Assembly (NCBI RefSeq): GCF_006345805.1
Contig: NC_043007.1
Coordinates: 21,700,001-21,764,000 of the forward strand
Length of the DNA: 64,000 bases
From: Octopus sinensis
Taxonomy: Eukaryota
Direction: 5' to 3'
Made by a program: the position numbers and the translations under genes. Below, one piece after another: positions 3,637 through 64,000 of the stretch (within the stretch, counting starts at the first letter, position 1; every line of letters starts with the position of its first letter). The notes below the pieces were generated by a model. The model did not search any database. It saw nothing but the letters and a program-made list of their open reading frames with translations, and had not been told where the DNA came from.

Positions 3637-5035
3637 CGATGAAAGCTATAGAGTTATGGTGGGCAGGACTGAAGCTGGCATTTTTGAGAGTCAACCAGTT
3701 GTTCTAGATGGAGTTGTCCGTTACCATGATTCTGTTGGTGAGGTTAAGCTTCCAGAAGAAGGTACTGCTAGAAATTTGGCTCAGAAGTTCAAGGAATACG
3801 AAAGTGAAAGTCTGAAACCAGTTATTTCCAGTACTACACCAGTTTCAATTAGGTGTGAACAAGATAAGACTGAATTTATCTCAGAACCGAAAACCCATAT
3901 TGAAACTTACGAAGGCAAACCTGATTTAGGAATCTTTGAAAGTCAACCTTCAGCTCTCCCTGAAGACATTACACCTGGGTTTGTGAAACCTGATGAGAAG
4001 TTGCCAGAAAGGGGCACAGCACAAAATCTGTTGGACAAATTTAAAGATATTCAAAAATCTTCAAGCGAAGTAGTGGTCAGTGGTCAACCAGATTTAACTC
4101 CTGATCTGTCTTCCAAAACTGAATTTGTCTCAGAACCACGCAGTACGTTTCAACCATATTGTGGTACAACTGAAAGTGGTATCTTCGAAAGCAAACCCGT
4201 CTATGATCCAAATGTTATCCGTCCTGAAGAAGTGGACACCGAAGACATCTTGCCAGACGAAGGTACAACTAAGAATCTGCTTGCTAAGTTTTCAAAATTA
4301 CGAGAAGACAAACCTTTTGTTTCGAAACCACCCATCGACGTTATTACTGCAAAAGAAGCTGGTCCAACCATTGCTGAAAGTCAGCCAGTTGTCCTCAGTG
4401 ATGTTTTCAAAGAAACCGATGTTGCAGAGGAGAAACTGCCTGAAAGTGGCCAAACAAGAAGTCTTTTAGCAAAGTTTCGAGAAATTGAAAGTGGAGCTGG
4501 ATCCCAGTCCCCCTCTCCTCGAAGTCGCAAGGAGTTTACTCCGCCACGTGAGGATCCTCGTGGGTTTAACACAGAAGCTGCTGTGAGTGGTGTCTATGAA
4601 AACACTCCGAAAAAGGGTTTAGAATATGAACCCACAAAAATAGAAGGAGGAATCTTTGAGAATCAACCTGTCAACCGGCAAGATGTGATAAAGGAAGCTG
4701 ACACAGGTGGGGAAGCTCTTCCGGAAAAGGGAACAGCACGCAGTCTTCTGTCGAAATTTAGCAAAATCGAAAACAATGCGCCCAACGCAACTTCACCAAG
4801 ATCTTTAAAAGAATTTACTCCTCCCAGAGATGACCTTCCAGTTAAATCTACAGCTGTAACTAGCAAAGCAACTTCAGAGAACGAACCTCAATATCGGTCT
4901 GATATCTCCAGGGAAGCTGATACTGATTGGAGTGAGGGTTTACCATCGAAGGGGACAGCAAAGAGCGTTGTTGATAAATTCCGTAACATCCAAGAAGAAG
5001 CCAAAAAAGATTTGGCCAAAGGAATGCCCAAAAAG
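3637..5035 (+). CDS. LIMA1: Large internal coding exon with six degenerate GIFESQP...LPExGTAxxLLxKF repeats (probable actin-binding region)
   Basis: Acceptor tttttatctttcag|C at 3636/3637, donor AAG|GTAGGA at 5035/5036. Lies within the 490-aa ORF 3587-5059, whose first 16 and last 7 codons are intronic. Balanced codon usage in an AT-rich context. Confidence 0.9.
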
Positions 5036-5664: not shown

Positions 5665-5915
5665 TTTACGAAAAAAACGAAAGACGAAGACAGGTGGTGC
5701 ACAAAACAAACAGATGTATTAGTATAACGCTCAGGAATAGAAAAAGTCTTTTACATTTCGAGCCTACGCTCTTCTACAGAAAGGAACACAGAAAAAAACA
5801 AGGAGAGAAAAAAAATGTGTGTTGTGGCTAATGGTGAGGCAACAAAAGAAAGAAAGAGACCTCGATATTATGTAAAATCTGTAAATCTAATATCTGACAA
5901 TTATTCAGTAGCCAT

Positions 5916-7809: not shown

Positions 7810-8747
7810 TTATATATTTATCTTGGCGAGGTTTAAATATAGAGAGAGAGATGTTATATACATAATATATATGTTGGGTCATCCCATAAATAATGCTGTT
7901 TTTTATATATTTCTCTTATTTTTCAAAATTAAGATAAACTTTCTCTCACTCTTTCTTCTGTTGGCCTTCTCACTTAGCCAGCGGGGTGGTGTCATTTGAA
8001 GGCTAAAACAATGCAAAGCGCATTGTGACCAGCGGTGTGTAGCAACATCTGATAGCCTAGTGATATATCTATATATATATATATATATATATAACCCTTT
8101 GCAAAGAATTCTTTATACAGTCACAATATTTGATGAAAAATTATTCTTAAATTAAAAATTATTGATTTTTACAAAAGAAACTTTTCAAAAAACATGGCAC
8201 AAACCTTTTGGAACACACATACCTGTGTGTGTATGTGTGTACAATGAAACATCATCTTATTTTTGCTTTTTTTCTTGTAATTCCTGTCATCAGCTAATTT
8301 TAATGTTATTTTTATTTAATGATCAACAATCTTGCATTCTCTAGATTTTTTTTTTTTCTTCAGATTATCACTCTTCCAGAATTGAACAAGATTATCTTAA
8401 TCTTTAATACTATCATTTTCCCTATTGCTTACATTTCACCCCCACTCAAATGCTCCCTCTACATACGGGTTTGCACATTACTGACATCAAGTTGTCTTGT
8501 CTATATTTTATTCAGTGTCCTCAATCTCGAACCAGTGAAACCGTCCTGTAGTAACACCTTAATTTAACAATTTAATTTAACACCCTCTGAGTGGTTGGCG
8601 TTAGGAAGGGCATCCAGCTGTAGAAACTCTGCCAGATCAAGACTGGAGCCTGGTGCAGCCATCTGGCTCGCCAGCCCTCAGTCAAAATCATCTAACCCAT
8701 GCTAGCATGGAAAGCGGACGTTAAACGATGATGATGATTTCATCTAA

Positions 8748-9626: not shown

Positions 9627-10474
9627 CTCAGTTAACGTGATTCACTCAGTTAACATATCTCGATTAACACAATTCACTCAGTTAACATAATTCACTCAGT
9701 TAACATATCTCGGTTAACACAATTCACTCAGTTAACGTGATTCACTCAGTTAACATATCTCGGTTAACACAATTCACTCAGTTAACATATCTCAGTTAAC
9801 ACAATTCACTCAGTTAACATATCTCGGTTAACACAATTCACTCAGTTAACATATCTCGATTAACACAATTCACTCAGTTAACATATCTCGGTTAACACAA
9901 TTCACTCAGTTAACATATCTCGGTTAACATAATTCACTCAGTTAACATATCTCGGTTAACACAATTCACTCAGTTAACATATCTCGGTTAACACAATTCA
10001 CTCAGTTAACATATATCGGTTAACACAATTCACTCGGTTAACATAATTCACTCAGTTAACATATCTCGGTTAACACAATTCACTCAGTTAACATATCTCG
10101 GTTAACACAATTCACTCAGTTAACATATCTCGGTTAACACAATTCACTCAGTTAACATATCTCGATTAACACGATTCACTCGGTTAACATGATTCACTCA
10201 GTTAACATATCTCGGTTAACATAATTCACTCAGTTAACATATCTCGGTTAACATAATTCACTCAGTTAACATATCTCGGTTAACACAATTCACTCAGTTA
10301 ACATAATATCGATTAACACGATTCACTCGGTTAACATATCTCAGTTAACACAATTCACTCAGTTAACATATCTCGGTTAACACGATTCACTCGGTTAACA
10401 TAATTCACTCAGTTAACATATCTCAGTTAACACAATTCACTCAGTTAACATATCTCCCTCAGTTAACATATCTC
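9627..10474. repeat. 32-bp higher-order minisatellite (TTCACTCAGTTAACATATCTCGGTTAACACAA)n, about 26 units
   Basis: Direct reading: core CTC(A/G)GTTAAC alternates with spacers ATAT and ACAATTCA. Confidence 0.95.
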
Positions 10475-12366: not shown

Positions 12367-14879
12367 ATATATATAAAGGGAACGCTCATGATTGCTTGAA
12401 ATATTTGATTTTATTGGAAGACACCCGATGCCTCTTCACGTCCTTTCCCAAGGATATGCGTATTTGTCTTACTCTAGCAGAGAGAAGAAGAACAAGAAGC
12501 ACAACAACAAGAAAAAAAAAATGATGAATTATTGAAATTTCTTATTTTGTGATCCTTCATTTTGTGTGCAGTTGAAAGCAGATTTTTTTTCTTATTCCCT
12601 AGTTTATCTAAAGTACACACATAATTTCTGAGTGACCCGGCACCTGCCATCAGGTATTATCTTGCATGGAACTCTTTTTCCCCCACTTTCGTTGACATTA
12701 CCATAATTATCTCCTGTAATAAATTGATTGTTGAAATAATCTCGTTGTTGTGATGACCGCATCAATTAATGAAGCATCTGTGTGTTGAGTTTTATCCGAA
12801 CGATGATGACTCCCTATTTTTTCTTGTATCTAACTTCCATCGCTTATGCTGTCTTTCGGACCAAGGAAAAACTGAATCCATACAAGGAAAAACTGTCAGA
12901 TTCTCTTTTTCTTTTGTTTTCAATGTCTTTTGAGTTTTTTTTTTTGTTTTTTTTTTGTCTTCTTATTAATATTCTTGCAGTGAATACAGATCCAATTGCC
13001 TAAAAACTTTTCTCTTAATCACTTCTTGTTCTCTCTTTTTTTTTTTTTTCTCTTTACATTTATTCCTACATCAGTCTTTTCATAAAAAGGTTCAAATATA
13101 GAGTTTCTAAATTTGGGGTTATTTTTAAATTTATTTATTCATTTTTTTTTTATAGTAAACTTAAGTTCAAAACATTTCTCTCAAAAAAACCAATGATTTC
13201 TAAATTTTATCCAGATGGTGTTTTTTTTTTCTTTATTTTATTTAAAAAAAATTTTTTTTTTTTGATAAATCCTTTTACAGAAGCTGGGTGAAAATTAAGT
13301 TTATACAACAAATATAATTTGGAACTCCTTAATTCTCATTTTCACATGCATATGAATGAGTGTATATATTTACTATGTCCTATATGTCTAAATGTGTGTA
13401 TGTGTGCATACATGCACACATATATATATATACAGATACATACACACACATATACATGTATGTTTGTGTGTATATATATATATAATATAAATTTTATATA
13501 TATATACATACACATATACATGTATGTTTGTGTGTATATATATAATATGAATGTGTGTGTGTTTAAAAAGAGAGAGAAAGATGTTTTTATCTATGGACTT
13601 GGTTGTTTTTTTTTATCCATCTAAAATTTCACACAGAATTATTATTATTATTATTATTAGCACAATCTTTAAAGCTAATGCGAAGAAGGTTCTCAAATAA
13701 GGTTCATCATAGGTTTCTGTGTGGCCATTGTCAACTGGACACTGTGATATTTTGTTCCATTATCCAGCATGCCGTACTACTTACCTGTACTTTCCAAGAA
13801 TTTTGTTTGCACCTAAAACCGAATCCCTGCTTGTTATTATTTAGTTTATTTTGCCATTTTCAATGCTTTTGTTTTTCTATTATTATTATTAGTATTATCA
13901 TTATTATTAATTACTGAAAGGTATTTTCATTTTAAATACGTAAACTAGTGTCTTTTGAATTACCTGCCCGTCGTGAGATTTGTTCTTAAATAACTTGAGA
14001 GAAATTAGGCTTTATTGATGAAGCAAAATGTGTCCAGTAAAAATGATTGAAATAAATTTGGTAATTTTACACACACACACACACATAATACTTATTTATT
14101 CACGAATAAAGAAGTGAACTGCAGTCAGTGCTTGTGTTTTTGTTAGCAGAATTACCCTCCCAAAATGCTGCAGTCCCGGTTATACACACACACACACATA
14201 ATATTTATTGATGCAATCAGATTCTCACAGTAAATTTTACAATAATATTTTGCTGTATTATGTGGGATGGACATTCCTGTTAAAAGATGTGTCTGAGTTG
14301 TCATTAACTTCTTTATCAAATTGTCATATTTTTTTAGTTACACTGCTGTGTTTCAGGAAACGCAGTGTTAAAAAAATTACAGATGTGTAACAAAAAACCT
14401 TCACAAATGAATTAAAGAAGTGACCTGCAGTCAGTGCTTGTGTTTTTGTTAGCAGAATTACCCTCCCAAAATGCTGCAGTCCCAGTTTCAATGTACAGTT
14501 TTGTGTCAAGAATCTCACGAAACACGTAGAAAAAATACAATGATGGTTATTTTCCATTTTATTTGCATCAGTTACATGGCAAATTTTATGAACTCCTGCT
14601 AGAATGAAAGCTATGTCAACAGTGGTGTTGTAATATTGTATATCTGTTATTTCTGCCACTCTGCCATTAGCTGGACATCAATATGATATTGACTGGTCCC
14701 AGATTGATCCCAATCTTTCATATGAAGTAGAGCACTGAGCAAGGCTTGAACCTACAGCCTTCAGCACTTAAACCGGCCATATCCAGCTCAAATATTCTAC
14801 CCATTTTATGTTCAGACTGGCTAGATCTGGCCTCTCACACCTACCTTACAATGTCATTGTCAACCAGAATTCATCTACA

Positions 14880-15160
14880 AAGCAATTGCCCCAGCTCCCC
14901 TTCAGGGTTGGCGAAAGCAATATGGTGGACAACGAAAAACCTGGCTGATGACAGTCAAGGCTGATCTGGAACACAACCTAGGCCTCCCCATATCTACGGC
15001 GTTCACCGCTGGAATAAGGAGTGGTTGGAGATCACGTGGTCGTTAGCCTCAAATCGCCAGGTCTGGTCAGCATTTGTGAGAGATGCAGCATTGAGGATGA
15101 ATGAAGCCAGTTCAACCCACCCCGGGTGAATGCTGTCTCAAAACAAGACAAGAAAAGTAT
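14880..15160 (+). mobile_element. 3' end of an RTE-clade LINE (frameshifted)
   Basis: QGWRKQYGGQRKTWLMTVKADLEHNLGLP / IYGVHRWNKEWLEITWSLASNRQVWSAFVRDA..., then an aacaagacaag tail. Confidence 0.7.
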
Positions 15161-17717: not shown

Positions 17718-18449
17718 ATAACTTGTTTTTGCTGGAATTTTCTAACATAAATCTTGAAGTTCGATTCTGTTAATCTGACCAATTCCTTTTAATTCTCTTG
17801 GTCAATTTTATTCCCTCTGCTTGGTGTAATATATGGTGTTCTGGTTTGTTAAATAATTATATATATATTTTTTTTTTTAGTTTTAGCAGTGTGACCCTAA
17901 ATCATTAGCTACCTCAATCAATTTTGTACATCTGCTTAACAAAGTCAATAAATAGTATTCCCTGTACTTAATTATAGTGTTATTAAATAAATTACTACTG
18001 TAGTGTTACGGTCTGGTTTAAAATTAGTGACATCATCAAGCCCTCCTTTCAGACAAAAAGTCCGTGTCTAACATAGATGCTTGCTTATTGTTTTAGCTCG
18101 GATAAGAAGCTATGTCTAAATATATCATTCTGGGCCGAACTTTATCATTCATTTGTATATTTTGTTATTTCCATAGTCTTTATTATAGACATCATTTAAA
18201 ACTTTTGTTTATTTTTTAAGACAATATCTGAGGGAAACAAACCGTTTTGTGAGCATCTAACGTACAGAGTTCTCTCCCTTGCTATTATCCGAATTTACAA
18301 TGAAGAATTTGCGTTGAACGTTGTCGGCAATTTGCTTTTTATTCTTATTCGTAACCACTTCGTTTCGCATACGTAGTTAACTCATAAAGCGCTGGGATTT
18401 GCACTTGCATAGCATAGACTGCTGAGCACATCTTATGAAAATGCACACA

Positions 18450-18965
18450 GGCGCAGGAGTGGCTGTGTGATAAGTAGCTTGTCTACCAACCACATGGTTC
18501 CGGGTTCAGTCCCACTGCATGGCATCTCGGGCAAGTGTCTTCTGCTATAGCCTCGGGCCGACCAATGCCTTGTGAGTGGATTTGGTAGACGGAAACTGAA
18601 AGAAGCCCGTCGCATATATGTGTGTCTGTGTTTCTCCTCCCAACATCGCTTGACAACCGATGCTGGTGTGTTTGTGTCTCCGTTACTTAGCAGTTTGGCA
18701 AAAGAGACCGATAGAATAAGTACTGGGCTTACAAAAGAATAAGTCCCGGGGTCGAGTTGCTCGATTAAAGGCGGTGCTCCAGCATGGCCGCAGTCAAATG
18801 ACTGAAACAAGTAAAAGAGAAAAGAGAAAAAATAACAAACAAAAAGTAGTTAGGTGCAGGAGTGGCTGTGTGGTAAGTAGCTTGTTTGCCAACCACATGG
18901 TTTCGGGTTCAGTCCCACTGCATGGCACCTTGGGCAAGTGTCTTCTACTATAGCCTCGGGCCGAC
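18450..18965 (+). mobile_element. SINE family A, one full and one truncated copy in tandem
   Basis: Heads at 18450 and 18853. Confidence 0.85.
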
Positions 18966-19734
18966 AAGTTCCGTCCAATCCATGTAAGCATGGAAAAATG
19001 GATGTTTAAACAAAGATGATGCTGGTAGTGATGATGATGATGATCATCATCATCATCATCATCTAATATAAGGTACCAGACAATTGGTATCGGCAGCGAG
19101 CTGGTAGAATCGTTAGCACGTCGGGCGAAATGCTTAGTGGTATTCTGTCTGCCGCTACATTCTGAGTTCAAATTCCGCCGAGGTCAACTTTGCCTTTCAT
19201 CCTTTCGAGGTCGATTAAATAAGTACCAGTTATGCACTGGGGTTGATGTAATCGACTTAATCCCTTTGTCTGTCCATGTTTGTCCCTTCTGTGTTTGCAT
19301 CTTGCCCTTCCACACTGCATTTTTCAGAATCTAGAAATTAGATCAGTGTTTTGATTAAAAAATTTTAAAAAAGCAGCAACGGCCTGAGGTCATAGCGTGC
19401 TGTTGACCTTCCAGCTGAGCAACTGAGGATTCCAGCATCCCATTATTAGTAATGTGCTATATCCGTAACAATGATTAACTGTTAAATTGGCCCATTTTAA
19501 CCAGCTGCAAGTGACTGTGAGCTGCAGAGGGCACACATCTGGCAAGTATGCAAATATTACCTTGCGGCTCTGTATTTAATTCCTGTAGATGTAAAACCTG
19601 TGATAGAATTGGCGTCGTTTTCATCGGAAAGCTATCTTTCAGATAATTAATGTCTTGAAAACTGTAATAAACCTCAGCACGTTGACATGTTCTGGTGAAA
19701 AGCAGTGAATAAATGGTGAATATAAAATACTATA

Positions 19735-20168
19735 GGCGTAGGAGTGCCTGTGTGGTAAGTAGTTTGCTTACCGACCACACGGCTCTCGGTTCAGTCCCAC
19801 TGCGTGGCACCTTGGGCGAGTGTCTTCTACTATAGCCTCGGGCCAACCAAAGCCTTGTGAGTGGATATGGTAAGCGGAAACTGAAAAAAGCTTGTCGTAT
19901 ATATGTATATATGTATATATATATATATATATTATATATATATATATATATAATATATATATATACACGTGTGTGTCTGTGTTTGTCCCCCCAACATTGC
20001 TTGACAACCGATGCTGGTGTGTTTACGTCCCCGTAACTTAGCAGTTCAGCAGAAGAGACCGATAGAATAAGTACTAGGCTAACAAAGAATTAAGTCCTGG
20101 GGTCGATTTACTCGACTAAAGGCGGTGCTCCAGCATGGCCACAGTCAAATGACTGAAACAAGTAAAAG
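19735..20168 (+). mobile_element. SINE family A, full length
   Basis: Same head, body and tail as 3039-3456. Confidence 0.85.
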
Positions 20169-24072: not shown

Positions 24073-24572
24073 TCTTTTACTTATTTCAGTCATTTTTGAC
24101 TGTGGCCATGCTGGAGCACCGCATAAAGGGGGTTTTTTTATCGAAGAAATCAACCCCAGGGCTCATTCTTTGTAAGCCTAGTACTTATTCTATCGGTCTC
24201 TTTTGCCGAACCGCTAAGTTTCGGGGACGCAAACACACCAGCATCGGTTGTCAAGCGATGTTGGGGGACAAACACAGACACACACATATATATATACATA
24301 TATATGAGGGGCTTCTTTCTGTTTCTGTCTACCAAATCCACTCACAAGGCTTTGGTTGGCCTGAGGCTACAGTAGAAGACATGTGCCCAAGGTTCCACGC
24401 AGTAGGACTGAACATGTGGTTGGTAAGCAAGCTACTTACCACACAGCCACTCCTGCTCCTATATAAATATATATAATGGGCTTCTTTACAGTTTCCAAAT
24501 CCACTCACAAGGCTTTGGTCAGCCTGCAGCTATAGTAGAAGACACTTACCATACAGCCACTCCTGCGCCTAT
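24073..24572 (-). mobile_element. SINE family A, full length plus partial head duplicate
   Basis: Reverse complement of family A; head ends at 24460. Confidence 0.8.
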
Positions 24573-28799: not shown

Positions 28800-29294
28800 T
28801 TGGCTATTGAATAATTGTCACATATTATTTTCAAGATATATATATATATATATATTTATATATAGAGGGCATTATACATACATGCCAGGAGGCAATTAAG
28901 TAGTTGTCCTTAATTGCTATATATATATATATATATACATATATAAACAATGTTTCCTTCTCATATTGTCAGTTCAGCCCATATCTTCTTCTCTGTCCTC
29001 CCTCTGTACAGTAAAAGGACAGCTCATATCTAAAGTTTAGTCATTGAGAACTAATTTGTCAAAACACCTTATCAGCTATGAAGATGATGATAATGATAGT
29101 AATAAATAATAATAAAAGAAAAATCAAAATTTAAAAAAAAAAATAGGGGTAGAAATGTCTTCTGTGTTTAAAAACAATGGAATATATTTAAAAAAAAAAA
29201 AAACTGACGTTAATTTCGAAAATTAACAATAGAAATAGGAGCAGATATACAAATCGCCATGGTGACGAGTTATCATGCTTTGACCAGGTTTCCT

Positions 29295-29780
29295 TCAGTT
29301 TAAAGCACAAGAAAGTTGACTCTCTCCTTCTTCTTCATCGCTCTGTCATCTTTCCACTAAGAATCGGCACCACTCCCTGATATCGCTGCTGCTGCCGCAG
29401 CCACTGAGACTACTAGAGCTGTTGCCAGAACCACCACGGCTGCTGCTGCTGGTTGCTGTTCGGCTGAGAGCTTCTAAATAGCATTCCACTCCTTCCTCTC
29501 ACTCACTCTCTCTCTCTCTATCTATCTATCTATCTTTTCTTCTCTCTCTCTATCTATCTGTTTCTCTCGCTTCCTCCCTCCCTCTCTCTAGCATATGTAG
29601 ACAGCGAGGCAACTCGGCGGCCAGCGGTCCATTGGACATTATTCAGTGCAGTCGTTAGTAGGCTAGCGTATATATATACACATATATACACACTCACGCT
29701 CATATTATATACACACACACATACACACGGTTCCGACTTGCGTTCTTCATCTCATTTTTGAAAAACCATCGATAGCAATG
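29295..29780 (+). promoter_or_regulatory. Candidate internal promoter / 5' UTR of the short isoform
   Basis: SINE-free and locally GC-rich, with (GCT)n and (CT)n tracts. TCAGT initiator-like motifs at 29295 and 29643. The only other ATG in about 480 nt is an ATG-TAG start-stop at 29595-29600. The TSS cannot be fixed from sequence alone. Confidence 0.55.
29778..29780 (+). CDS. Start-codon-only coding end of a candidate alternative first exon (short LIM-only isoform)
   Basis: gatagcaATG|GTAAGT is a consensus donor in phase 0, matching the phase-0 acceptor at 36128 and giving [15 protein letters not shown]... Confidence 0.7.
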
Positions 29781-32700
29781 GTAAGTGCATCGTCCTTTCT
29801 CTTCTCAACTAATTGGAATCGCTTTAAATAAAACTCCCATCATTATCTTTTCCTTTCTCAGATTTTTTAAGCATTTAGAATAATCTTCTCTATTTCTTTT
29901 TAATAAATTACCATAGAATGACAATAGTAACAGAATCTCTCTTCTTTTTTCCTTCTTCCTTGCTACTTTTCATACATCCTGATGCAAGGATATTCGACTA
30001 TGCCCCTCACTTACTTTTTCGCTTCTCTTTATGAAATTCCTCTTGTGATTCCTCTCTGGCTACAGCAATCATTGATTCCATTTTAAACCGTTATCTTGTT
30101 TCCAAAATAAGGCCACCTCTCTTGCTATCTACACCAAGATATTTCTCAATCTCTCCTACTTTCTTGTTATTATTAAACTGGGTTTGTGGCAGGATGAAAG
30201 AAAAGCGTCAGCTTCGTTACAAAGAAAAACGGCTTTGTACTCTATGGTAAAATAAAATCATTATTTATAAATTCCTCCAACTTGAATTAGTATATTCTTC
30301 TGTTGTTGTTCTTCTTCTTGGGGCTCCTTGTTTTCCCTTAATTTCTATTTTTACTCTCTCTCTCTTCTAAGGCTGATCTTATTTTTTCCCTATATTTAAC
30401 CTGATCTCATCCTGTCTCTCTCTACAAACTTCTTTGTTCTATATATTAACGACATTTTCTCTACTCTCACTTTCATATCTGTCACTCTTGTTTATACACG
30501 GTATCGATTTTGTTTTATTTTGGATCGTTCGTTAGATTTTCTTCCTGAAAGCCAGCTTATTATTTATTTGCCTTGCCATGTGTCCGTTGTCACTTGACTT
30601 TCAGTTTTTTTTCTTCCCCCACCTCTAATTACTTATTCGAGTGCTGCTGTTTAAGAAAGAGAAAAAAAAATGTTCTCTCTCCTCATATATAAAATTATCT
30701 TTTACAGTAAATATATATATTTAGCAATTGACAAAATCTCTAGACACTTCAAGTCCATGTCCGTCTTCAGCCACCTTATTTAACAAGAAAGAAAAAAAAA
30801 ACTTTGAAATAAGACTAATTATAAGAATCTAGGCCACGCGATTCTAAGGGTTTTTAACTTCTTGTCAAGTTGATGTGTTGTAATAGCAGTTAATTGTGAC
30901 TTATGCATAAAGAAAACCACGCAACTGACAACTGCCATCATACTCTGACATTATATACACACATACATACATGCAAGCATACATAGTATGTACTTGCATA
31001 TGTATACATGTATAGTATAGCCTTCCTCTCTGACAGGAGGGCGTTTTGATAAATTATTTACTGAATTAAGATGCACAGCTCTCACTGCTCTTATTAAATT
31101 AATAACCACCAGAGGGGAAAAATTATCACAACTTTATTATTATCATTATTGTTGTTGTTGTTGTTGTTGTTGTTATTATTATTATTATTATTTGCAACTT
31201 TTCTATATCAGTTACATTTAGTAATGTTACTCGATGTGGTTGGTGTTGTTCGTGTACTATGATGTAACAACGACTAGAAAACCCCCCCATTTTATCACCG
31301 CCTGCTGCCGGTCTAGAAGTGAGGAGATAGATAGTAGGGCAAAACTGAAGCATTATTATTACTCAAGTGAATTTAGTATATCAGTGGGTAACTGGATACT
31401 TAGTCACTGTAGGCAACCTGACACATGAGAAGTTTTTTGAACGCTTAAAAAGAAGAAAAAAACTAATAATAATAATGATAATAATAAGAGCTGAGCTTAA
31501 AACAAGAAACTTAATGAGATCGAATCACGTTATATCCGGATTTTTAATGAGATGTTTCCTTTAGATTAATTAATTAATCAAACAGAAGTGCAGCTAGAAC
31601 GAAAACTAGTCATTTCCTCCTCCCCCCCCCCCAGTCCATCTCTCAACGAGAATCCCCCCCTTCTTACATAAAATTCACCACCACAAAGAAAGAGTATATA
31701 ATAACGAGTGCCTTTCTCGGCCCTTGTTTTTTTGTTTTTTTGTTTTTCTCTTAAGCTGGTCTACTGCAGATAGCTGAATAAAGAGGAGCAGCCCCCACTC
31801 CTAGTATCACTGTAGTTGTTGTATAACAGTGTTCCGCCACCCCCACCGCTGTTCATAGCAGTTGTCACAGCAACATAACTCTGCTGCTACAGCAGAAGTG
31901 GTATTCAGTCTAAGACTCTCTCTCTCTCTTTACAGCAGCATATCTAAACTAACCTCATTCTCCCTCTTTGTTGATTTATTTTCTCTTTGAAAGCTCTACT
32001 TTACTTTTTTCAGTCTTTCATTCTACTCCTATTCACTTCTTGGGTCTGTTTTTCCAGATTTGAGAGAATTTCGATAGAATTTTCAAATCTGAAATTTTAG
32101 TGGAAACATATTCAATCAAAAAAACAGGGTGTTAGATATTAGCTACACCAGCCACTAAAACGGATTCATGGGTGTATATATATATATATATATAAAAATA
32201 CCTGTGTGTAGATATAAAAAGAGTGACACACATACAGAACAAGAGATCCAGTATGGCCATAGCTAAGAAAATAGACTCTAGATATTACTTGCTATTTTGT
32301 TGCTCCTTGGTTATGGGTGGAATGTCAATGCTATGATTAGTGCTACTAGCTCAGCATTCATTTCCAAATTTGAAAACCCCCTGAAACACTTTTGATAAAG
32401 CTCAGTTCTTTCTCTTTTGCTGTTGTTATTCTTGCGTTGTCTATTAACAGTTGGTATAGACTTGTGAATTTTGTAGCTTATTTCCAGAATCTGCAGATTT
32501 TTAACATTTACTGAAATAATGATGATAAATTTTTGATGAATGCTTGAAGTTTCATACAAATGTCAGAGATCCTACAGGCAGCTCAAGTTATGATAGTCAC
32601 AAATAATTATCATTACCTGACTATGAAGTACTAATTTATATTAGTTGAAGTTAAAACTTAGTTCATATGTCTAATTATGGATTTATAAAATGATTAATTA

Positions 32701-36079: not shown

Positions 36080-36274
<195 letters not shown>

Positions 36275-46602: not shown

Positions 46603-47222
46603 AAGGCGCCAAGCTGGCAGAAACGTTTCGTCCAGCGTGCTAATGTTTCTGCCAGCTTGCCCCAATGCGTAGCCGTATTTCGTCTGCCACTACGTTCTGA
46701 GTTCAAATTCCGCCGAGGTCGACCTTGCCTTTCATCCTTTCGGGATCAATAAATTAGGTACCAGTTACGCACTGGGGTCGATATAATCGACTTGATCTGT
46801 TTGTCTGTCCTTGTTTGTCCTCTCTGTGTTTAGCCCCTTGTGGGTAGTAAAGAAATAGGTATTTCGTCTGCCACTATGTTCTGAGTTCAAATTCCGCCGA
46901 GGTCGACTTTGCCTTTCATCCTTTCAGGATCAATAAATTAGGTACCAGTTACGCACTGGGGTCGATATAATCGACTTGATCTGTTTGTCTGTCCTTGTTT
47001 GTCCTCTCTGTGTTTAGCCCCTTGTGGGCAGTAAAGAAATAGGTATTTCGTCTGCCACTATGTTCTGAGTTCAAATTCCGCCGAGGTCAACTTTGCCTTT
47101 CATCCTTTCGGGTTCGATAAATTAAGCACCAGTTACGCACTGGGGTCGATATAATCGACTTGATCCATTTGTCCTTGTTTGTCCCCTCTTTGTTTAGCCC
47201 CTTGTGGGTAGTAAAGAAATAT
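46603..47222 (+). mobile_element. SINE family B trimer (184-bp period) with 18-bp TSD
   Basis: cgtctgcc at 46681, 46865 and 47049; TSD atattgttaactaaatct at 46585-46602 and 47223-47240. Confidence 0.9.
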
Positions 47223-47671
47223 ATATTGTTAACTAAATCTGAGCTGAGAGGGCATGGAAGGAAGGAAATATATACATGCAAAGAATTATATTGTTGTAAA
47301 GTTTTGGCAATATCTTGTATTTAGAGTAAGGAGGATATTGAGAGAGTCAAATTACAAGACCATTTTCCAAAATACACAGGATTCTAATGAGGCCAGTTAC
47401 TTAGTTTCCCATGATGTATAAATAACCGAATTGGCAACATTCTCCCTGAAACGGATGCCAGTCTGTTTCAGGGTTAATCATTTACATCTGAATGGACTGG
47501 AGTATTGCGAAATGCAGGGTTTTGCTTATGAACATAACACATCACCCTGTCCATGATTCTGCAATCGTGAACACAACACCCTGACCATTGAGCTATAGAT
47601 TTTTTTTTTTTTAAATGAATATATGAGAGAGCTAAAGGTAGGGCTTACATGAGCAATACAAGAATAAAATA

Positions 47672-48057
47672 GGCGCAGGAGTGGCTGTGTGGTAAGTAGC
47701 TTGCTAACCAACCACATGGTTCCGGGTTCAGTCCCACTGCGTGGCATCTTGGGCAAGTGTCTTCTGCTATAACCCCGGGCCGACCAATGCCTTGTGAGTG
47801 GATTTGGTAGACGGAAACTGAAAGAAGCCTGTCGTATATATGTATATATATATGTGTGTGTCTGTGTTTGTCCCCCTAGCATTGCTTGACAACCGATGCT
47901 GGTGTGTTTATGTCCCCATAACTTAGCGGTTTGGCAAAAGAGACCAATAGAATAAGTACTGGGCTTACAAAGAATAAGTCCCGGGGTCGAGTTGCTCGAC
48001 TAAAGGCGGTGCTCCAGCATGGCCGCAGTCAAAATGACTGAAACAAGTAAAAGAGTA
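47672..48057 (+). mobile_element. SINE family A, full length, near consensus
   Basis: Same as 3039 copy. Further family A copies or fragments at about 1440-1607(-), 21910-22085(+), 22640-22830(+), 26906-27177(-), 40400-40562(+), 45050-45380(-), 51022-51380(+) and 60346-60722(-). Confidence 0.85.
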
Positions 48058-50198: not shown

Positions 50199-51744
50199 TT
50201 AAAACACTTAAAAAAAAAAAACTCAATTGGTAATTTTCTAATTAAAGCTTCTACTGCTTAAATCCAAAACCTTTTGGGTCTCTCTCTGTTCTTAGTAAAT
50301 TTAGTGTTGTTCATGTGGATTTAATACAGAATTGTTATCTCTTAAACAGAACCAAATTGTGCAGCCATCATGTGTGTCACTTGTACAGGTTTCCTTTAGA
50401 TCTTATTATTGCAGAAAAGTTCCCTTGATTTGTGAATGGAACAATGAAGTTTGGTGCAAGTTTCCTGATGATACAATTGTGGAAAAAAGAACCCCAAAAT
50501 TTACATTTGTTGGTCTACATTGACTAGTTCCTGAGTTCTGTGGTTTGATGGTGAGCAATGAGAGATAGGTGTAGATAGAGGATTTACAAGCACTGTGCAT
50601 CATATATGAGTGAGCTAAAGGTAGAGTTTATATGAACATTATGAGGAAGTAAAACTCAAGATGTATAACAGCTGAAGACCCTTTGCAAAAATCTTTTTCG
50701 AATACACACTGATTGTGTGCAACTCCGGTGTGTGTGTATGTGCACCTGTAGAGCTATGTGAGTGTCCCAAAGGCCTAGAGTTTCGAGTATGGGGCTTGTA
50801 CATGTGTGTGTGTATTTGATCATTCGTTTTACGTCTGTTTGTCCATGCCAGCATGGGTTGGATGAATATTTATTGTGAGGCATTATTTTATGATCAATAC
50901 CTTTTTAACAGTACAAGGCACTGACAACCAGCCTTTTTAGTATAAATGCCATGATATACAGTCTATAACAGCAGATTAAATTTCAAGTTGTTGTACTAAA
51001 CAAGTTATTTTATATAAATGCAGATACCACATGGTTCTGGGTTCAGTCTTACTGCGTGGCACCTTGGGTAAGTGCCTTTTACTATAGCCTCGGGCCAACC
51101 AAAGCCTTGTGAGTGGATTTGGTAGACGGAAACTGAAAGAAGCCCGTTGTATATATATGTGTGTGTGTGTGTTTCTGTGTCTGTTTGTCCCCCCTCCCCC
51201 AACATCACTTGACAACCAATGCTGGTTTGTTTACATCCCCGTAACTTAGCGGTTCGGCAAAAGAGACCGATAGCACAAGTACTAGACTTACAAAGAATAA
51301 GTCCTGGGGTAGATTTGCTCGACTAAAGTTTGTGCTCCAGCATGGCCACAGTCAAATGCCTGAAACAAAATAAAAGAGTATACAAATTTATATATTTAAC
51401 TAAAATACTGTGACTGTGTTTTTGTGAAGAGGCTGCCTAAATTTAACAAACATTTATCTGTCATACAAAAAACGAGTCTTTTCAGGAAACCACAAGGATC
51501 CCTCTCCCTTTCACCTGCTCTTTCTCTCTTCTTAGAACAGACTCAGTAATACTTTCACTAGTTTCTACACTCTTACAAGCTCTTCAGGAATGCTTACTTC
51601 ATCCTGAAAGAGGAGACAAGGGACAAGAGTATAACTTGAAGCTACAAATGTAGCCCTGTTTTAATTTTTACAGAACTACTGCTACAGCTTAGAGGCCATG
51701 TCTTTCCAGGTTACAGGCTTAATTACCAAGGTATATCCTCGGTT

Positions 51745-56028: not shown

Positions 56029-56283
<255 letters not shown>

Positions 56284-58800
56284 CTACAGCTGTAAATTCT
56301 ATCCTGTTTCTTTCACTTCTTGCAGTGACATTAAACAGTTTTTCAACCAAAACAGAGCATCAAAATAGTATTTTATCCCACAATTACTAGGACTGTGCTC
56401 AATTTTTCTTTTTATTCCTTCCCCCACCCCTATCCCCACTTTTTTTTTTTTTTTTTAACAACTTTTTGTTTTCAAACTTATTGTTTGAAAATTTAGTCAG
56501 ACTGAGAATTTCATGTGATTTTACTACCTTCTAAATAGAACAAATTTTAAACAAGATTTCTTCCAATGTTGCCTCCATGACAGATACAAACAAAAAAAAA
56601 ATACCTTGCCCATTCTTCTTCACGAACAAACTATTTTTAAATTCTTTATTTATTTTGCTCAATATTTATCCTAATTGCAAGGTGCTACAGTCTTCTTTTT
56701 TTTTTTCTCTTTTTCTTTTTTTTTTTTCAATATTACAACTATTATTTTCTCTCGTCAAAAACCCTTGCTTTTTGCAGACAGTTTCTCTCTATAATAGTCT
56801 ACACTAAACCTACAGTCTTTCCTTCTTTCCTTTAATATTACAAGCAGTAAAAATTAGAGATATTTCCTTGTCTCCTTTTTATAAACTTCATATTATCGAC
56901 CTAGGTTGCACATTTTTAATGATTAACACCAGTTATCTAATTTAAATGTTTTATTATAGATATTTTTCAGAAATATTTGAGTAGATAACTTCTTCCTGTT
57001 ATTCATTAGATGCCGAATCTAATTGTTATATAAATTACCTGTAAAAATAATAAACAACATCCATAAAAGAAATACGTAAACCTTTGAAACTTATCCTTTT
57101 TTTAATGAAGTAATAATAATAATAATAATAATCCGTATGTTATTTTTAACACAGTTCTTCTCCCTTGGCTATGTCAACGACTATACTTGAGTAGTATTTC
57201 CTATGTCACTCCTTTTGGTTCTCATAAAAATGTTTGCCCTGCCAATGCGCACAGCTGATAAAATATTACCATCTTGGCTTTTTTTAAAATAAAAAAAACA
57301 AAAAAACAAAACAATCACATTAACGAAAAAAAATACTTTAGAGTTACCATTCTCACTGAACATACATAACACTAGCTTTTTGAGTCTTTGCCCTTTTTTT
57401 TATGTTAATTAATATTTTACATTCATTATTTTGAAGACAAAAAAATAACAGAAAAAAAATTGTATCATTTTTTGCTGCTCTGCTTCTCTGAAGCAAACAC
57501 ACATTCGTATCAATTGACTTTTGAAATTTTAACCTTGACAAGTATTAATAAAGCTAAACTGCTACAAAATGTTGGCAGCCTGATCTAGATATGTCATGTG
57601 ACTGCTCTGCTTTCTCTCTCAGCATTTCAGTTTCTGTTTTTTTGTTTGTTGTTTGGGGGCTTTTTGCGTTTTTTTTTTTTTGTTTTTTTTCCCCCTCCAA
57701 ATTGTTGTCTATTTTACTTGTTTCTCTCTCTCTCTCTCTCTTTCTCTATCTGCAGCTGCAATATCAATGCTAAGTGTTTGTCGTCTTCATGCCAATAGCA
57801 TCTATGTTTCTTGTACTCAAAACATTTTCCTAGTTTGCATATTTAAGACATGAAAAAAGGAAAAAAAAAAAAAACTTAAATCTCCAAAAATATTTTTTTT
57901 AAATGCAAAAAAAAACCAAAAAAACACACATATATATATATATATATATACACATACATATATATACCTTTCTATCATGATGTACTCACAATCCGATTAC
58001 TGAAGCAGATAATAATGACTGCTGTACTTCGAATTCTTCACAGAGGCCTGAGTCCCTGATGGTTCTCAACAGATAAAATTTCTTTTATTCTACTTAACAA
58101 AAAAATGTCACTGATTAATGCTTGAGCTGCTATGTACTTTGTTATTTAGGTCACTGGCACTCTGTAGATGTTCCCTGGCTGCTGGAATCACCATAATCAC
58201 AGTATTTTATTACGTGTTTAATAAAGAAACAAATCTTTGAAACATAAATCTTGTATTATCTATTATTATTAAGTTTGCATGTAAAATACAAAAGATATGG
58301 ATATGCGTCTTTTTTCTTCTTCTTTTTTTCCTTTTCCTTTTAATTTGTGCCAAAATTTACTCCATAGACTTCTCTGTCGCCTATTGAAATCATAGTCTTT
58401 TTACTGATGTATGTTATGTATGTCTTGTCTTTGGCTAGAAAATTGACATAGATACTATAAATGTCCAAGGAAGAGGAACAGCGCTTGCCAGTTCCATTTT
58501 CCATGTCTTCCATCTCTAGTGGTGTTGACGCCACTTTGAAATTATAATAATGGCGATGGCTTTTAGCACGTCTGGACGTTGCAAGAATTATTCAACCATT
58601 TTGAAATTCACTGCTGCCAACTATATCATATAATTTTATTGGACTGTTTCTTTCACACTATATACATATATATATATATATATGCATATATATATATATG
58701 TATATATATGTGTATTCTTTCCTTTTCTTACACCAAATTATCTAGCTAAACACATTTTTCTTTTCTTTTTTTTATGTATTTGAAATAAAGAAATTTATTA
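56284..58800 (+). other. Probable long 3' UTR with several AATAAA signals
   Basis: No recognisable SINE between the stop codon and about 59600; U-rich tracts; AATAAA at 57049, 57547, 58220 and about 58785. The true 3' end is not determinable. Confidence 0.45.
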
Positions 58801-61010: not shown

Positions 61011-61908
61011 CCGTAAATCCTCGAGTATTGTCCGTCCTTGAGTAAAATACGCTGGGAATTTTTAGGGGGCTGTACCTCTGAAAAACCTAAACCTTGTGTA
61101 TGATACTCACCCCTTCTCTAACTTGAGTCGTGCGTAATTAAGCCAGCAGCACTGAGTCGAACAAACACTTCTGTGCATGCATAATAAAATAATGGTGATG
61201 TTCTTAACTGTTATATGGGAATGTAAATATGTTAGCAAATTGTTTTTGTTACATGTTATTCTGTGTTCTGAATACTTTTATTTTGATAAATGTTGCTTAC
61301 TGCAAGTTATGGATGATTCTTTTATGACTTCATTGCTTTCAGGCTTAGCTTAAGGTATTTTCGTGCCCGACATCACAAAATGTGTCTGAATAAACATTGC
61401 CAGACAGCAAATAAAGACTCGGACATTGCTTAGAAAATATTTTTTATTTTTAACCTCGTATGTAGTACGCACTAGGGATTTTGACCTTTAAATTTTGGGC
61501 ACTAGGGATCTTGATCTTTAAATTTTGGGCACTAGGGATTTTGACCTTTAAATTTTGGGCACTAGGAATTTTGACCTTTAAATTTTGGGCACTAGGGATT
61601 TTGACCTATAAATTTGGGGCACTAGGGATTTTGACCTTTAAATTTTGGGCACTAGGGATTTTGACCTTTAAATTTTGGGCACTAAGGATTTTGCCCTTTA
61701 AATTTTGGGCACTAGGAATTTTGACCTTTAAATTTTGGGCACTAGGAATTTTGACCTTTAAATTTTGGGCACTAGGGATTTTGACCTTTGAATTTTGGGC
61801 ACTAGGGATTTTGATCTTTGAATTTTGGGCACTAGGGATTTTGAACTTTAAATTTTGGGCACTAGGGATTTGGGGGAAAAAATGCAGATTATACTCGAGG
61901 ATTTACTG
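61011..61908. mobile_element. Non-autonomous Tc2/pogo-like (Tc1/mariner superfamily) DNA transposon
   Basis: TIR CCGTAAATCCTCGAGTAT (61011-61028) and ATACTCGAGGATTTACTG (61891-61908), 17/18 match; TA on both sides (61009-61010, 61909-61910). CCGTA termini are typical of Tc2-group elements. Confidence 0.8.
61469..61870. repeat. 30-bp minisatellite (GCACTAGGGATTTTGACCTTTAAATTTTGG)n, about 13 units, inside the Tc2-like element
   Basis: Direct reading. It explains the 177-aa (LTFKFWALGI)n ORF at 61481-62014. Confidence 0.95.
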
Positions 61909-62239: not shown

Positions 62240-64000
62240 CTGGAGAAGAAGACCCGTCGAGCCAAGTAAAATCGCAGTTGTGGAAGATACTGGTGTCACA
62301 CAAATGGCACATAAAAGCACCAGCACCTATTGAGCGTTGGGCCTCATGGAGGCAAAGTGGTACATGAAAAGCTCCTTTTGAATATTAGGCCTCACAGGGG
62401 CAATGACTGAGACCTTTGGTATTATGTCATGCTTGAGAAGACGACCCATCGAGCCAAGTAAAATCGCAGTTGTGGAAGATACCTATTTCTTTACTACCCA
62501 CAAGGGGCTAAACACAGAGAGGACAAACAATGACAGACAAATGGATTAAGTCAATTATATCGACCCCAGTGCGTAACTGGTACTTATTTAATCGACCCCG
62601 AAAGGATGAAAGGCAAAGTTGACCTCGACAGAATTTGAACTCAGAACATAGCGGCAGACAAAATACCTATTTCTTTACTGCCCATAAGGGGCTAAACACA
62701 GAGGGGACAAACAATGACAGACAAATGGATTAAGTCAATTATATCGACCCCAGTGCGTAACTGGTACTTATTTAATCGACCCCGAAAGGATGAAAGGCAA
62801 AGTTGACCTCGGCGGAATTTGAACTCAGAACGTAGCGGCAGACAAAATACCTATTTCTTTACTGCCCACAAGGGGCGAAACACAGAGGGGACAAACAAGG
62901 ACAGACAAACAGATTAAGTCAATTATATTGACCCCAGTGTGTAACTGGTACTTATTTAATTGACCCTGAAAGGATGAAAGGCAAAGTTGAACTCAGAACG
63001 TAGCGGCAGACAAAATACTGCTAAGCATTTCGCTTGGCGTGCTAACGATTCTGCTAGCTCGCCACCTTGTTGTGGAAGATACCGGTGTCACACAAATGGC
63101 ACTGATGCCAGTGGCACATAAAAGCACCAGCACCTATTGAGCATTGGGCCTCACAGAGGCGAAGTGGTATATGAAAAGCTCCTTTTGAGAATTGGGCCTC
63201 ACGGAGACAGTGACTGAGACCTTTGGCATTATGTCATGCTTGAGAAGAAGACCCATCAAGCCAAGTAAAGTCGCAGTTGAGGAAGATACCGGTGTCACAC
63301 AAATGGCACCGATGCCAGTGGCACATAAAAGCACCAGGACCTTTTGAGCTTGGTTGGGCCTCACAGAGGCAAAGTGGTACGTGAAAAGCTCCTTTTGAGT
63401 ATTGGGCTTCACGGGGGCAGTGAAGAAGAAGACCCATCAAGCCAAGTAAAATAACAGTCATGGAAGATACCAGTGTCACACAAATGGCACTTGTGCCAGT
63501 GGTATGTAAAAGCACCAGCAACTTTCAAGTGTTGGAGCTCACGGAGGCAAAATGGCTGATGCTGGTGGAACACGAAAAACTCCTTTTATGTGTGGGGCTC
63601 ACGGAGTCAATAACGAAGACCTTTGGCATTATGTCATGCTTGAGAAGTCCCATTAAGCCAAGTAAATTAGCAGTTGTAACAGATACCAGGGTCATGTAAA
63701 AGCACCCATTACACTCTCAGAGTGGTTGGCATTAGGAAGCATATCCAGTTGTAGAAACAGTGCTTGATCAGATTGGAGCCTGGTGCAGCCTTCTGGTTCG
63801 CCTGTCAAATTGTCCAACCCATGCCAGCATGGAAAGCGGACGTTAAATGATAATGATGATGATACTCTCTTATTGGCATTATTTATTCACCACTACATTT
63901 TCAGAGTGGTTGGCATTAGGAAGGGCATCCAGCTATTGAAACTGCCAGATCAGATTGGAGCCTGGTGCAGCCTTCTCGTTCGCCATTCCTCAGTCAAATT
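62240..64000 (+). mobile_element. Tandemly amplified RTE ORF2-end/3' UTR modules, interrupted by a SINE trimer
   Basis: Repeated gaagaagaccc.tc.agccaagtaaa.tcgcagttgtggaagatac and ttgggcctcacggaggcaa..gagacctttggcattatgtcatgcttgag, ending in the (GAT)n family tail at about 63845-63862. Confidence 0.7.
62483..63068 (-). mobile_element. SINE family B trimer (184-bp period) with 14-bp TSD
   Basis: ataccta at 62479, 62663 and 62847; TSD gttgtggaagatac at 62469-62482 and 63069-63082. Confidence 0.9.

Follow-up and report, generated by a model that had tools for sequence, protein, structure and literature searches.

Proteins of the EPLIN class, comprising LIMA1, LIMD2, and XIRP2, were defined together with the EPLIN motif by Koch et al. 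2012 (PMC3305314). In vertebrates, XIRP2 gives rise both to a repeat isoform without the LIM domain and to a LIM isoform without the repeats; at the 3' end, the reading frames of the two isoforms overlap (PMC10259482). LIMA1 is transcribed from two promoters (PMC2172667). The notion, put forward in a sequence-only reading of the locus described here, that vertebrates obtain a small LIM-only protein and long LIM proteins from separate paralogs is therefore incomplete. Here, we focused on a 64,000-nucleotide (nt) stretch of the Octopus sinensis genome (NC_043007.1, positions 21,700,001 to 21,764,000 of the forward strand; assembly GCF_006345805.1), referred to as the window, to which all coordinates below refer. 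The gene contained in the window is a mollusc member of the EPLIN class, with a LIM domain of the LIMA1/LIMD2/XIRP2 type, and in a large intron of this gene we found a candidate first exon, at 29295-29780, whose only coding triplet would be the ATG at its very end.

A candidate ATG-only exon for a LIM-only transcript

The features on which the gene model is based are the following.

3637..5035, + strand: large repeat exon of 1,399 nt and 466 codons, with the phase-0 donor AAG/GTAGGA, assigned by homology
29295..29780, + strand: candidate 5' exon of a LIM-only transcript, noncoding except for the ATG at 29778-29780; putative, proposed from its composition
29497..29591, + strand: CT-rich tract of (CT)n/(CTAT)n, 95% pyrimidine, ending in the AG at 29590-29591 and resembling an acceptor
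29595..29600, + strand: one-codon upstream open reading frame, ATG-TAG, read from the sequence and containing the one ATG of the block besides that at 29778
29781..29786, + strand: GTAAGT donor in phase 0, directly 3' of the ATG, with a donor score of 9.86
36128..36273, + strand: LIM exon 1 (146 nt), with the phase-0 acceptor ttgtgcag/GAC and the donor GTAAGG, encoding DKGNKF...CNTKLT
56100..56283, + strand: last coding exon, with the acceptor tatttcag and the stop codon TAG at 56281-56283, encoding the remainder of the LIM domain followed by the EPLIN motif and a short tail

Joining 29778-29780 to 36128-36273 and 56100-56283 yields 333 nt with 110 codons (MDKGNKF...ETSCQS*), so that the splice arithmetic of the sequence-only reading, which had proposed a phase-0 acceptor at 36128 and a LIM-only product of 110 amino acids (aa), is correct. 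LIM exon 1 covers zinc finger 1 and half of zinc finger 2, and its only in-frame ATG falls inside the zinc finger. The predicted product contains a single LIM domain (PF00412, E = 1.4e-12), which spans residues 15 to 70 and covers the whole Pfam model. Among solved structures, it is closest to the LIM domains of EPLIN/LIMA1 (2d8y, E = 1.5e-26) and LIMD2 (2lzu, E = 2.7e-23), with CRP and LMO far behind, and the alignment with 2d8y reaches residue 83 of the query, thereby spanning the EPLIN motif KGNYDEGFG located just C terminal of the LIM domain. The predicted LIM domain is thus, by its sequence, of the EPLIN/LIMD2 type and has both features of the class, i.e., one LIM domain and an adjacent EPLIN motif. 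The stop codon follows 40 residues past the LIM domain, which differs from the LIMA1-type arrangement of a central LIM domain with long flanks.

To assess the conservation of this reading frame, we used L004, a transcript contig of a related species assembled from RNA-seq run ERR12945499, whose last exon is 89.5% identical in DNA to 56096-56285. The similarity between the window and L004 stops at the TAG stop codon. Codons 1 to 48 of the last exon showed seven synonymous differences and a single nonsynonymous one, and the differences were distributed over the three codon positions as 5/3/14. This pattern indicates that purifying selection acts on the LIM frame, and therefore some isoform must enter LIM exon 1 in phase 0 with an upstream ATG. 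There are three conceivable routes: direct splicing from the donor at 5035 to 36128, an independent first exon that ends in a phase-0 donor, or skipping of the large repeat exon. The last of these, in which an exon upstream of 3637-5035 would be spliced to LIM exon 1 as in XIRP2, was rejected, because an exon of 1,399 nt with an acceptor in phase 2 and a donor in phase 0 cannot be skipped while supplying the frame.

For the second route, the block at 29295-29780 is the candidate. The motif gcaATG/GTAAGT, which the sequence-only reading had placed at 29778-29786, is present in the sequence, occupying 29775-29786 with the leading gca included and with the ATG at 29778-29780. The good Kozak context claimed for the spliced product is likewise borne out by a G at position -3 and a G at position +4. 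When scored with an approximate consensus matrix, the donor at 29781 (9.86) exceeds the donors of three homology-supported exons (8.69, 3.42, and 7.21). The closest in-frame stop codon 5' of the ATG is a TAG at 29664, and only two ATGs (29595 and 29778) occur in 29295-29786. The GC content of the block is 0.46 to 0.49 and, at values of 0.48 to 0.49 compared to 0.36 in the whole window, places it above all other repeat-free noncoding stretches of the window and at least level with the coding exon. Moreover, 29200-29799 contains 23 CpG dinucleotides versus none in the preceding 400 nt, and the GC content drops sharply, from 0.39-0.49 before the donor to 0.27-0.32 straight after 29780. Even though 31% of the window aligns to other parts of it, a second copy of 29295-29786 was not found in it.

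The block was also examined for other identities. A coding exon was rejected on either strand, given that the longest open reading frame (ORF) has at most 54 aa and none has a notable ATG. A known RNA was rejected as well, since an Rfam scan of the window returned no match, and so was a repeat, since the block is single copy in the window.

In the arrangement that we propose, a promoter inside the 31-kb intron would make the block at ∼29.3 to 29.78 kb the 5' exon of a transcript, untranslated except for its final three bases, the ATG. The GTAAGT at 29781 would be spliced to 36128, and the resulting mRNA (29780^36128-36273^56100-56283) would encode the 110-aa LIM-only, LIMD2-like protein. An upstream promoter would drive the repeat protein, of which at least the main form would end at a separate exon at 12603-12653, with the last exon serving only as 3' untranslated region (UTR). 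We consider it probable that a LIM-only transcript arises inside the intron. For the specific proposal that the exon with the ATG at 29778 starts this transcript, with its transcription and the 29780^36128 junction as we infer them, our confidence stays just short of an even chance; most of the difference is taken up by LIM-only transcripts with another 5' structure, e.g., with entry via the CT tract that ends at 29591.

LIM-only transcripts and genes of other molluscs

In a comparison of mollusc gene structures, which the sequence-only reading had suggested as a check, LIM-only genes and transcripts with a very short first coding exon were found. The LIMD2 gene of Mactra antiquata (P0007) has three coding exons, the first of which, ATGTCTGAACAAATTGAG/GTAAGA, comprises six codons and joins in phase 0 to cacag/GAGAAAGGA, at the position equivalent to 36128. 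A Logan transcript (L001, encoding P0002) contains a 5' UTR of 45 nt, a frame of 111 aa that begins with MDDKTDE-DKGLKIAVQTEKC... (MDDKTDE-DKGLK...), and a long 3' UTR, and a second LIM-only transcript (L006) encodes 123 aa. The LIMD2-like proteins of Mactra, Dreissena (P0009), and L001 resemble the predicted octopus product in their size of 104 to 111 aa, in the combination of one EPLIN-type LIM domain with GNYDEGFG, and in a tiny first coding exon with a phase-0 join located a single residue N terminal of the K-G found ahead of the LIM domain. They differ from it in that their first exons encode 6 to 11 residues, whereas the candidate described here encodes the Met alone. However, the N-terminal peptides of the mollusc LIM-only proteins are short and mutually unrelated, which makes a first exon reduced to a bare Met a plausible and small step. 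Judged from these sequences, LIM-only transcripts appear to be a normal product of the EPLIN-class locus in molluscs, which supports the proposed transcript in kind only. A literature search for LIMD2 in molluscs found nothing.

In Mactra, a repeat gene (P0061) is located on the same strand 28 kb upstream of the LIMD2 gene, and the exon order is the same as in the window; the difference is that the repeat and LIM parts are annotated there as separate genes. On CM103825.1 (31.61 to 31.67 Mb; L007 and L003), the repeat gene, a 356-aa model, and LIMD2 follow each other in a row on one strand, and these three annotated genes may in fact belong to a single locus. The genome of Lottia gigantea contains an intronless LIM-only gene of 95 aa (KB201890.1; L008, 6001-6288), which was probably formed by retrocopying of a LIM-only mRNA. 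In another Logan contig (L002), positions 1 to 420 are intron-like sequence that ends in ...tttgcccatgcag and lies immediately 5' of ATGTTTGAG. Because this intron-like sequence precedes ATGTTTGAG, the N terminus "MQ" of P0001 is probably an artifact of an unspliced transcript.

The repeat isoform and competing explanations

The exon at 3637-5035 encodes six repeats of ∼84 aa with the pattern GIFESQP ... LPExGTAxNLLxKFxxIE ... EFVSEPR/EFTPPR. Its relatives are mollusc proteins of ∼600 aa, mostly without a LIM domain, which form a family without a name; all named relatives come from bivalves or gastropods, and the nearest ones, with 61 to 62% identity, are L004 and L005, a genomic contig of a related species (ERZ21867824:ctg111618l). 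The N-terminal exons present in L004 were not found in the window. A Pfam search at E ≤ 1 returned no family for the large exon, the protein P0035, or the repeats of P0055, a gastropod protein with repeats and a LIM domain. A Xin or other actin-binding domain in the repeat exon was rejected on these grounds, so that the repeat part of the long product that the sequence-only reading had envisaged contains no recognized actin-binding domain. The FE[ST]QP core of the repeats bears some resemblance to Xin repeats; the Pfam search gave no Xin match.

The 3' end of the repeat isoform can be deduced from L004, which points to one further feature of the window.

12603..12653, + strand: alternative exon of 51 nt, cctag/TTT ATC TAA...CATCAG/gtatta, homologous to the 55-nt exon of L004

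L004 consists of the large exon (...AMPKK), a 55-nt exon (TTA AAC TAA...) that contains a stop codon, and the last exon. This transcript skips LIM exon 1, so that what it retains of the LIM domain, the second half, falls into the 3' UTR. In L005, the 55-nt exon maps 6.7 kb 3' of the large exon, between an ag and a gt. The octopus sequence at 12603-12653 aligns to it including the intron flanks, with a local score of 56 versus 26.6 ± 2.4 (maximum, 37) for shuffled queries. The remainder of the intron gave no alignment to the related genome, where BLAST matches were confined to microsatellites and one short interspersed nuclear element (SINE). A repeat protein spliced via 12603-12653 would end in ...GMPKK-FI-stop, with the TAA as the third codon of the exon. 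The usual rule for nonsense-mediated decay (NMD) requires 50 to 55 nt between a stop codon and the downstream junction. Since the stop codon sits only 42 nt upstream of the 3' end of the 51-nt exon, we infer that NMD would be escaped, provided that only one further junction follows. A long repeat isoform without a translated LIM domain was thus found in the relative, by way of L004, and not in O. sinensis itself. This bears on the suggestion of the sequence-only reading that one gene yields both a LIM-only and a long LIM protein: the LIM-only product and its mollusc precedents speak for the first half, while the long form of the relative lacks the LIM domain. A counterpart of 29295-29780 was not found in the 20 kb 3' of the large exon in ERZ21867824:ctg111618l, a stretch that ends before LIM exon 1.

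Several observations weigh against the ATG exon at 29778 as the start of a LIM-only transcript. The ATG/GT motif by itself occurs at chance frequency in the intron at 5036-36127: 7 of its 1,782 GT sites equal or exceed 29781 in donor score, and it contains 17 combinations of an ATG, an open frame, and a phase-0 donor, with further ATG-only sites at 5831 and 19867 and an "MA" site at 8747. The sequence-only reading had described the block as SINE free and nearly devoid of ATGs. The former agrees with its lack of a copy in the window and the latter with its count of two ATGs, but this poverty is mild, as two or fewer ATGs are found in 3.8% of 492-nt windows, and it was defined post hoc, with the left edge of the block placed just 3' of two ATGs. 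An exact look-up of the 110-aa product in the protein collection gave no match, and a homology search returned best relatives with at most 65% identity, none of them from O. sinensis or its genus. In the collections searched, we found no O. sinensis transcript, annotation, or protein for this locus. L004 is unbranched from the 55-nt exon to the last exon, and the protein collection holds no LIM-containing ORF from run ERR12945499, which suggests that transcripts with LIM exon 1 are rare or absent in this sample. Finally, 5035^36128 splicing alone could account for the selection on the LIM frame.

What distinguishes the 29778 site from the other ATG/donor sites is its context, namely, its GC and CpG content, uniqueness, few ATGs, upstream stop codon, and Kozak positions, and not the motif. 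The site at 5831 is a unique ATG/GTGAGG but has a C at -3 and AT-rich surroundings, and the remaining competitors are located inside SINE copies or are preceded by several ATGs. The 29778 site is the only one among them that combines unique sequence with a single ATG in the 300 nt upstream and a purine at -3.

The explanation that competes best with the proposed transcript, even if we regard it as unlikely, holds that the LIM domain arises solely as the C terminus of the repeat protein, by 5035^36128 splicing with the stop-codon exon skipped, and that the block is no exon and its ATG/GTAAGT a coincidence. As both sites are in phase 0, they can be joined in frame (...GMPKK-DKGNKF...), and proteins that combine repeats with a LIM domain are annotated in the gastropods Nucella (P0055, 807 aa), Batillaria (P0005), and Haliotis rubra (P0010, "LIMD2-like isoform X4"); that the motif is not rare in the intron fits this explanation, too. 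However, it leaves unexplained why the GC-richest unique noncoding block ends exactly at a strong donor. LIM-only mRNAs are, moreover, real in other molluscs, and the sole related long-form transcript, L004, does not contain the LIM domain.

Less likely still is, in our view, a LIM-only transcript with another structure, in which 29592-29780 is an internal exon preceded by a transcription start site and a noncoding exon, or in which the ATG lies elsewhere, e.g., at 5831. The 95% pyrimidine tract with the AG at 29590-29591 resembles an acceptor, and entry at this AG would produce an internal exon of 189 nt, in which the frame coming from 5035 reads H-M-stop. Further phase-0 ATG/donor sites exist in the intron, and the first exons of other mollusc LIM-only genes encode 6 to 11 residues and not one. 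Against this stand the poor surroundings of 5831 and of the other sites, as described above, and the fact that we saw no ORF in the intron that resembles the N-terminal peptides of other molluscs. The block might instead have a regulatory or transcribed function that has nothing to do with LIM coding (as an enhancer, as the promoter of a noncoding RNA, or as a poison exon within the long transcript), but this seems improbable, since it belongs to no Rfam family and such an element gives no reason for a good-context ATG exactly at the donor, although its unique, GC- and CpG-rich sequence with microsatellites would suit it and 29592-29780, with its early in-frame stop codon, resembles the conserved 51-nt stop exon.

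With respect to other features of the window, a SINE-like element occurs in many copies on both strands, e.g., at 18436-18849, 19733-20089, 24127-24529, 47529-47999, and 51008-51322, and chance translations of these copies share GLNPEPCGW and LPNPLTRHW. The sequence at 14731-15043 (+ strand) is unique and GC rich and contains an open frame that ends in ...GWRKQYGGQRKTWLMTVKADLE and that resembles the tail of the reverse transcriptase ORF of a long interspersed nuclear element. Four tandem arrays were detected.

9640-10474: 32-nt unit, 23.6 copies
61469-61871: 30-nt unit, 13.4 copies
46675-47221: 184-nt unit
62479-62994: 184-nt unit

Comparison with vertebrate EPLIN-class genes

If the ATG exon is real, a second promoter and a LIM-only product of 110 aa have to be added to the annotation of this locus. 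Gene predictors easily miss such a product because its first coding exon consists of the ATG only. In combination with the stop exon at 12603-12653, the ATG exon would then show that one invertebrate EPLIN-class gene makes separately what vertebrates partly spread over LIMA1, LIMD2, and XIRP2, which would bear on how ancestral isoforms were divided among these three. A stronger version, which we regard as doubtful, is that the locus encodes two mutually exclusive proteins, a repeat-only protein via the stop exon of 51 to 55 nt and a LIM-only protein via the intronic promoter and the ATG-only exon, with the last exon, common to both, translated in the latter and serving as 3' UTR in the former. 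In that case, a split similar to that of XIRP2 would predate the vertebrate LIMA1/LIMD2/XIRP2 duplications, and LIMD2 would be a former isoform that turned into a separate gene. The mechanism itself is not new, given that alternative promoters, ATG-only first coding exons, and mollusc LIMD2-like isoforms are known or annotated.

The locus shares with LIMA1 alpha/beta the proposed use of alternative promoters for a long and a shorter protein from one EPLIN-class gene (PMC2172667), but both LIMA1 isoforms keep the LIM domain and the flanking actin-binding regions, whereas the short form here would be LIM-only. With LIMD2, the predicted product has in common that it is a small protein with one LIM domain and the EPLIN motif, as reflected in the match to 2lzu. 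Vertebrate LIMD2 is, however, a separate paralog, whereas here an internal promoter of a single invertebrate EPLIN-class locus would serve the same end.

The likeness to XIRP2 lies in a single EPLIN-class gene that would keep repeat and LIM isoforms apart and in shared 3' exons that are read differently, as the last exon, which encodes part of the LIM domain, serves as 3' UTR in L004. The short form of XIRP2 differs in that it keeps the N-terminal exons and arises by skipping of exon 7 and not from an internal promoter, and in its C-terminal domain of 470 aa (PMC10259482). In addition, the mollusc repeats have no Xin match in Pfam, and skipping of the large exon breaks the frame here. The locus is best described as resembling the XIRP2 division into a repeat and a LIM isoform, more than a combination of a LIM-only with a long LIM protein.

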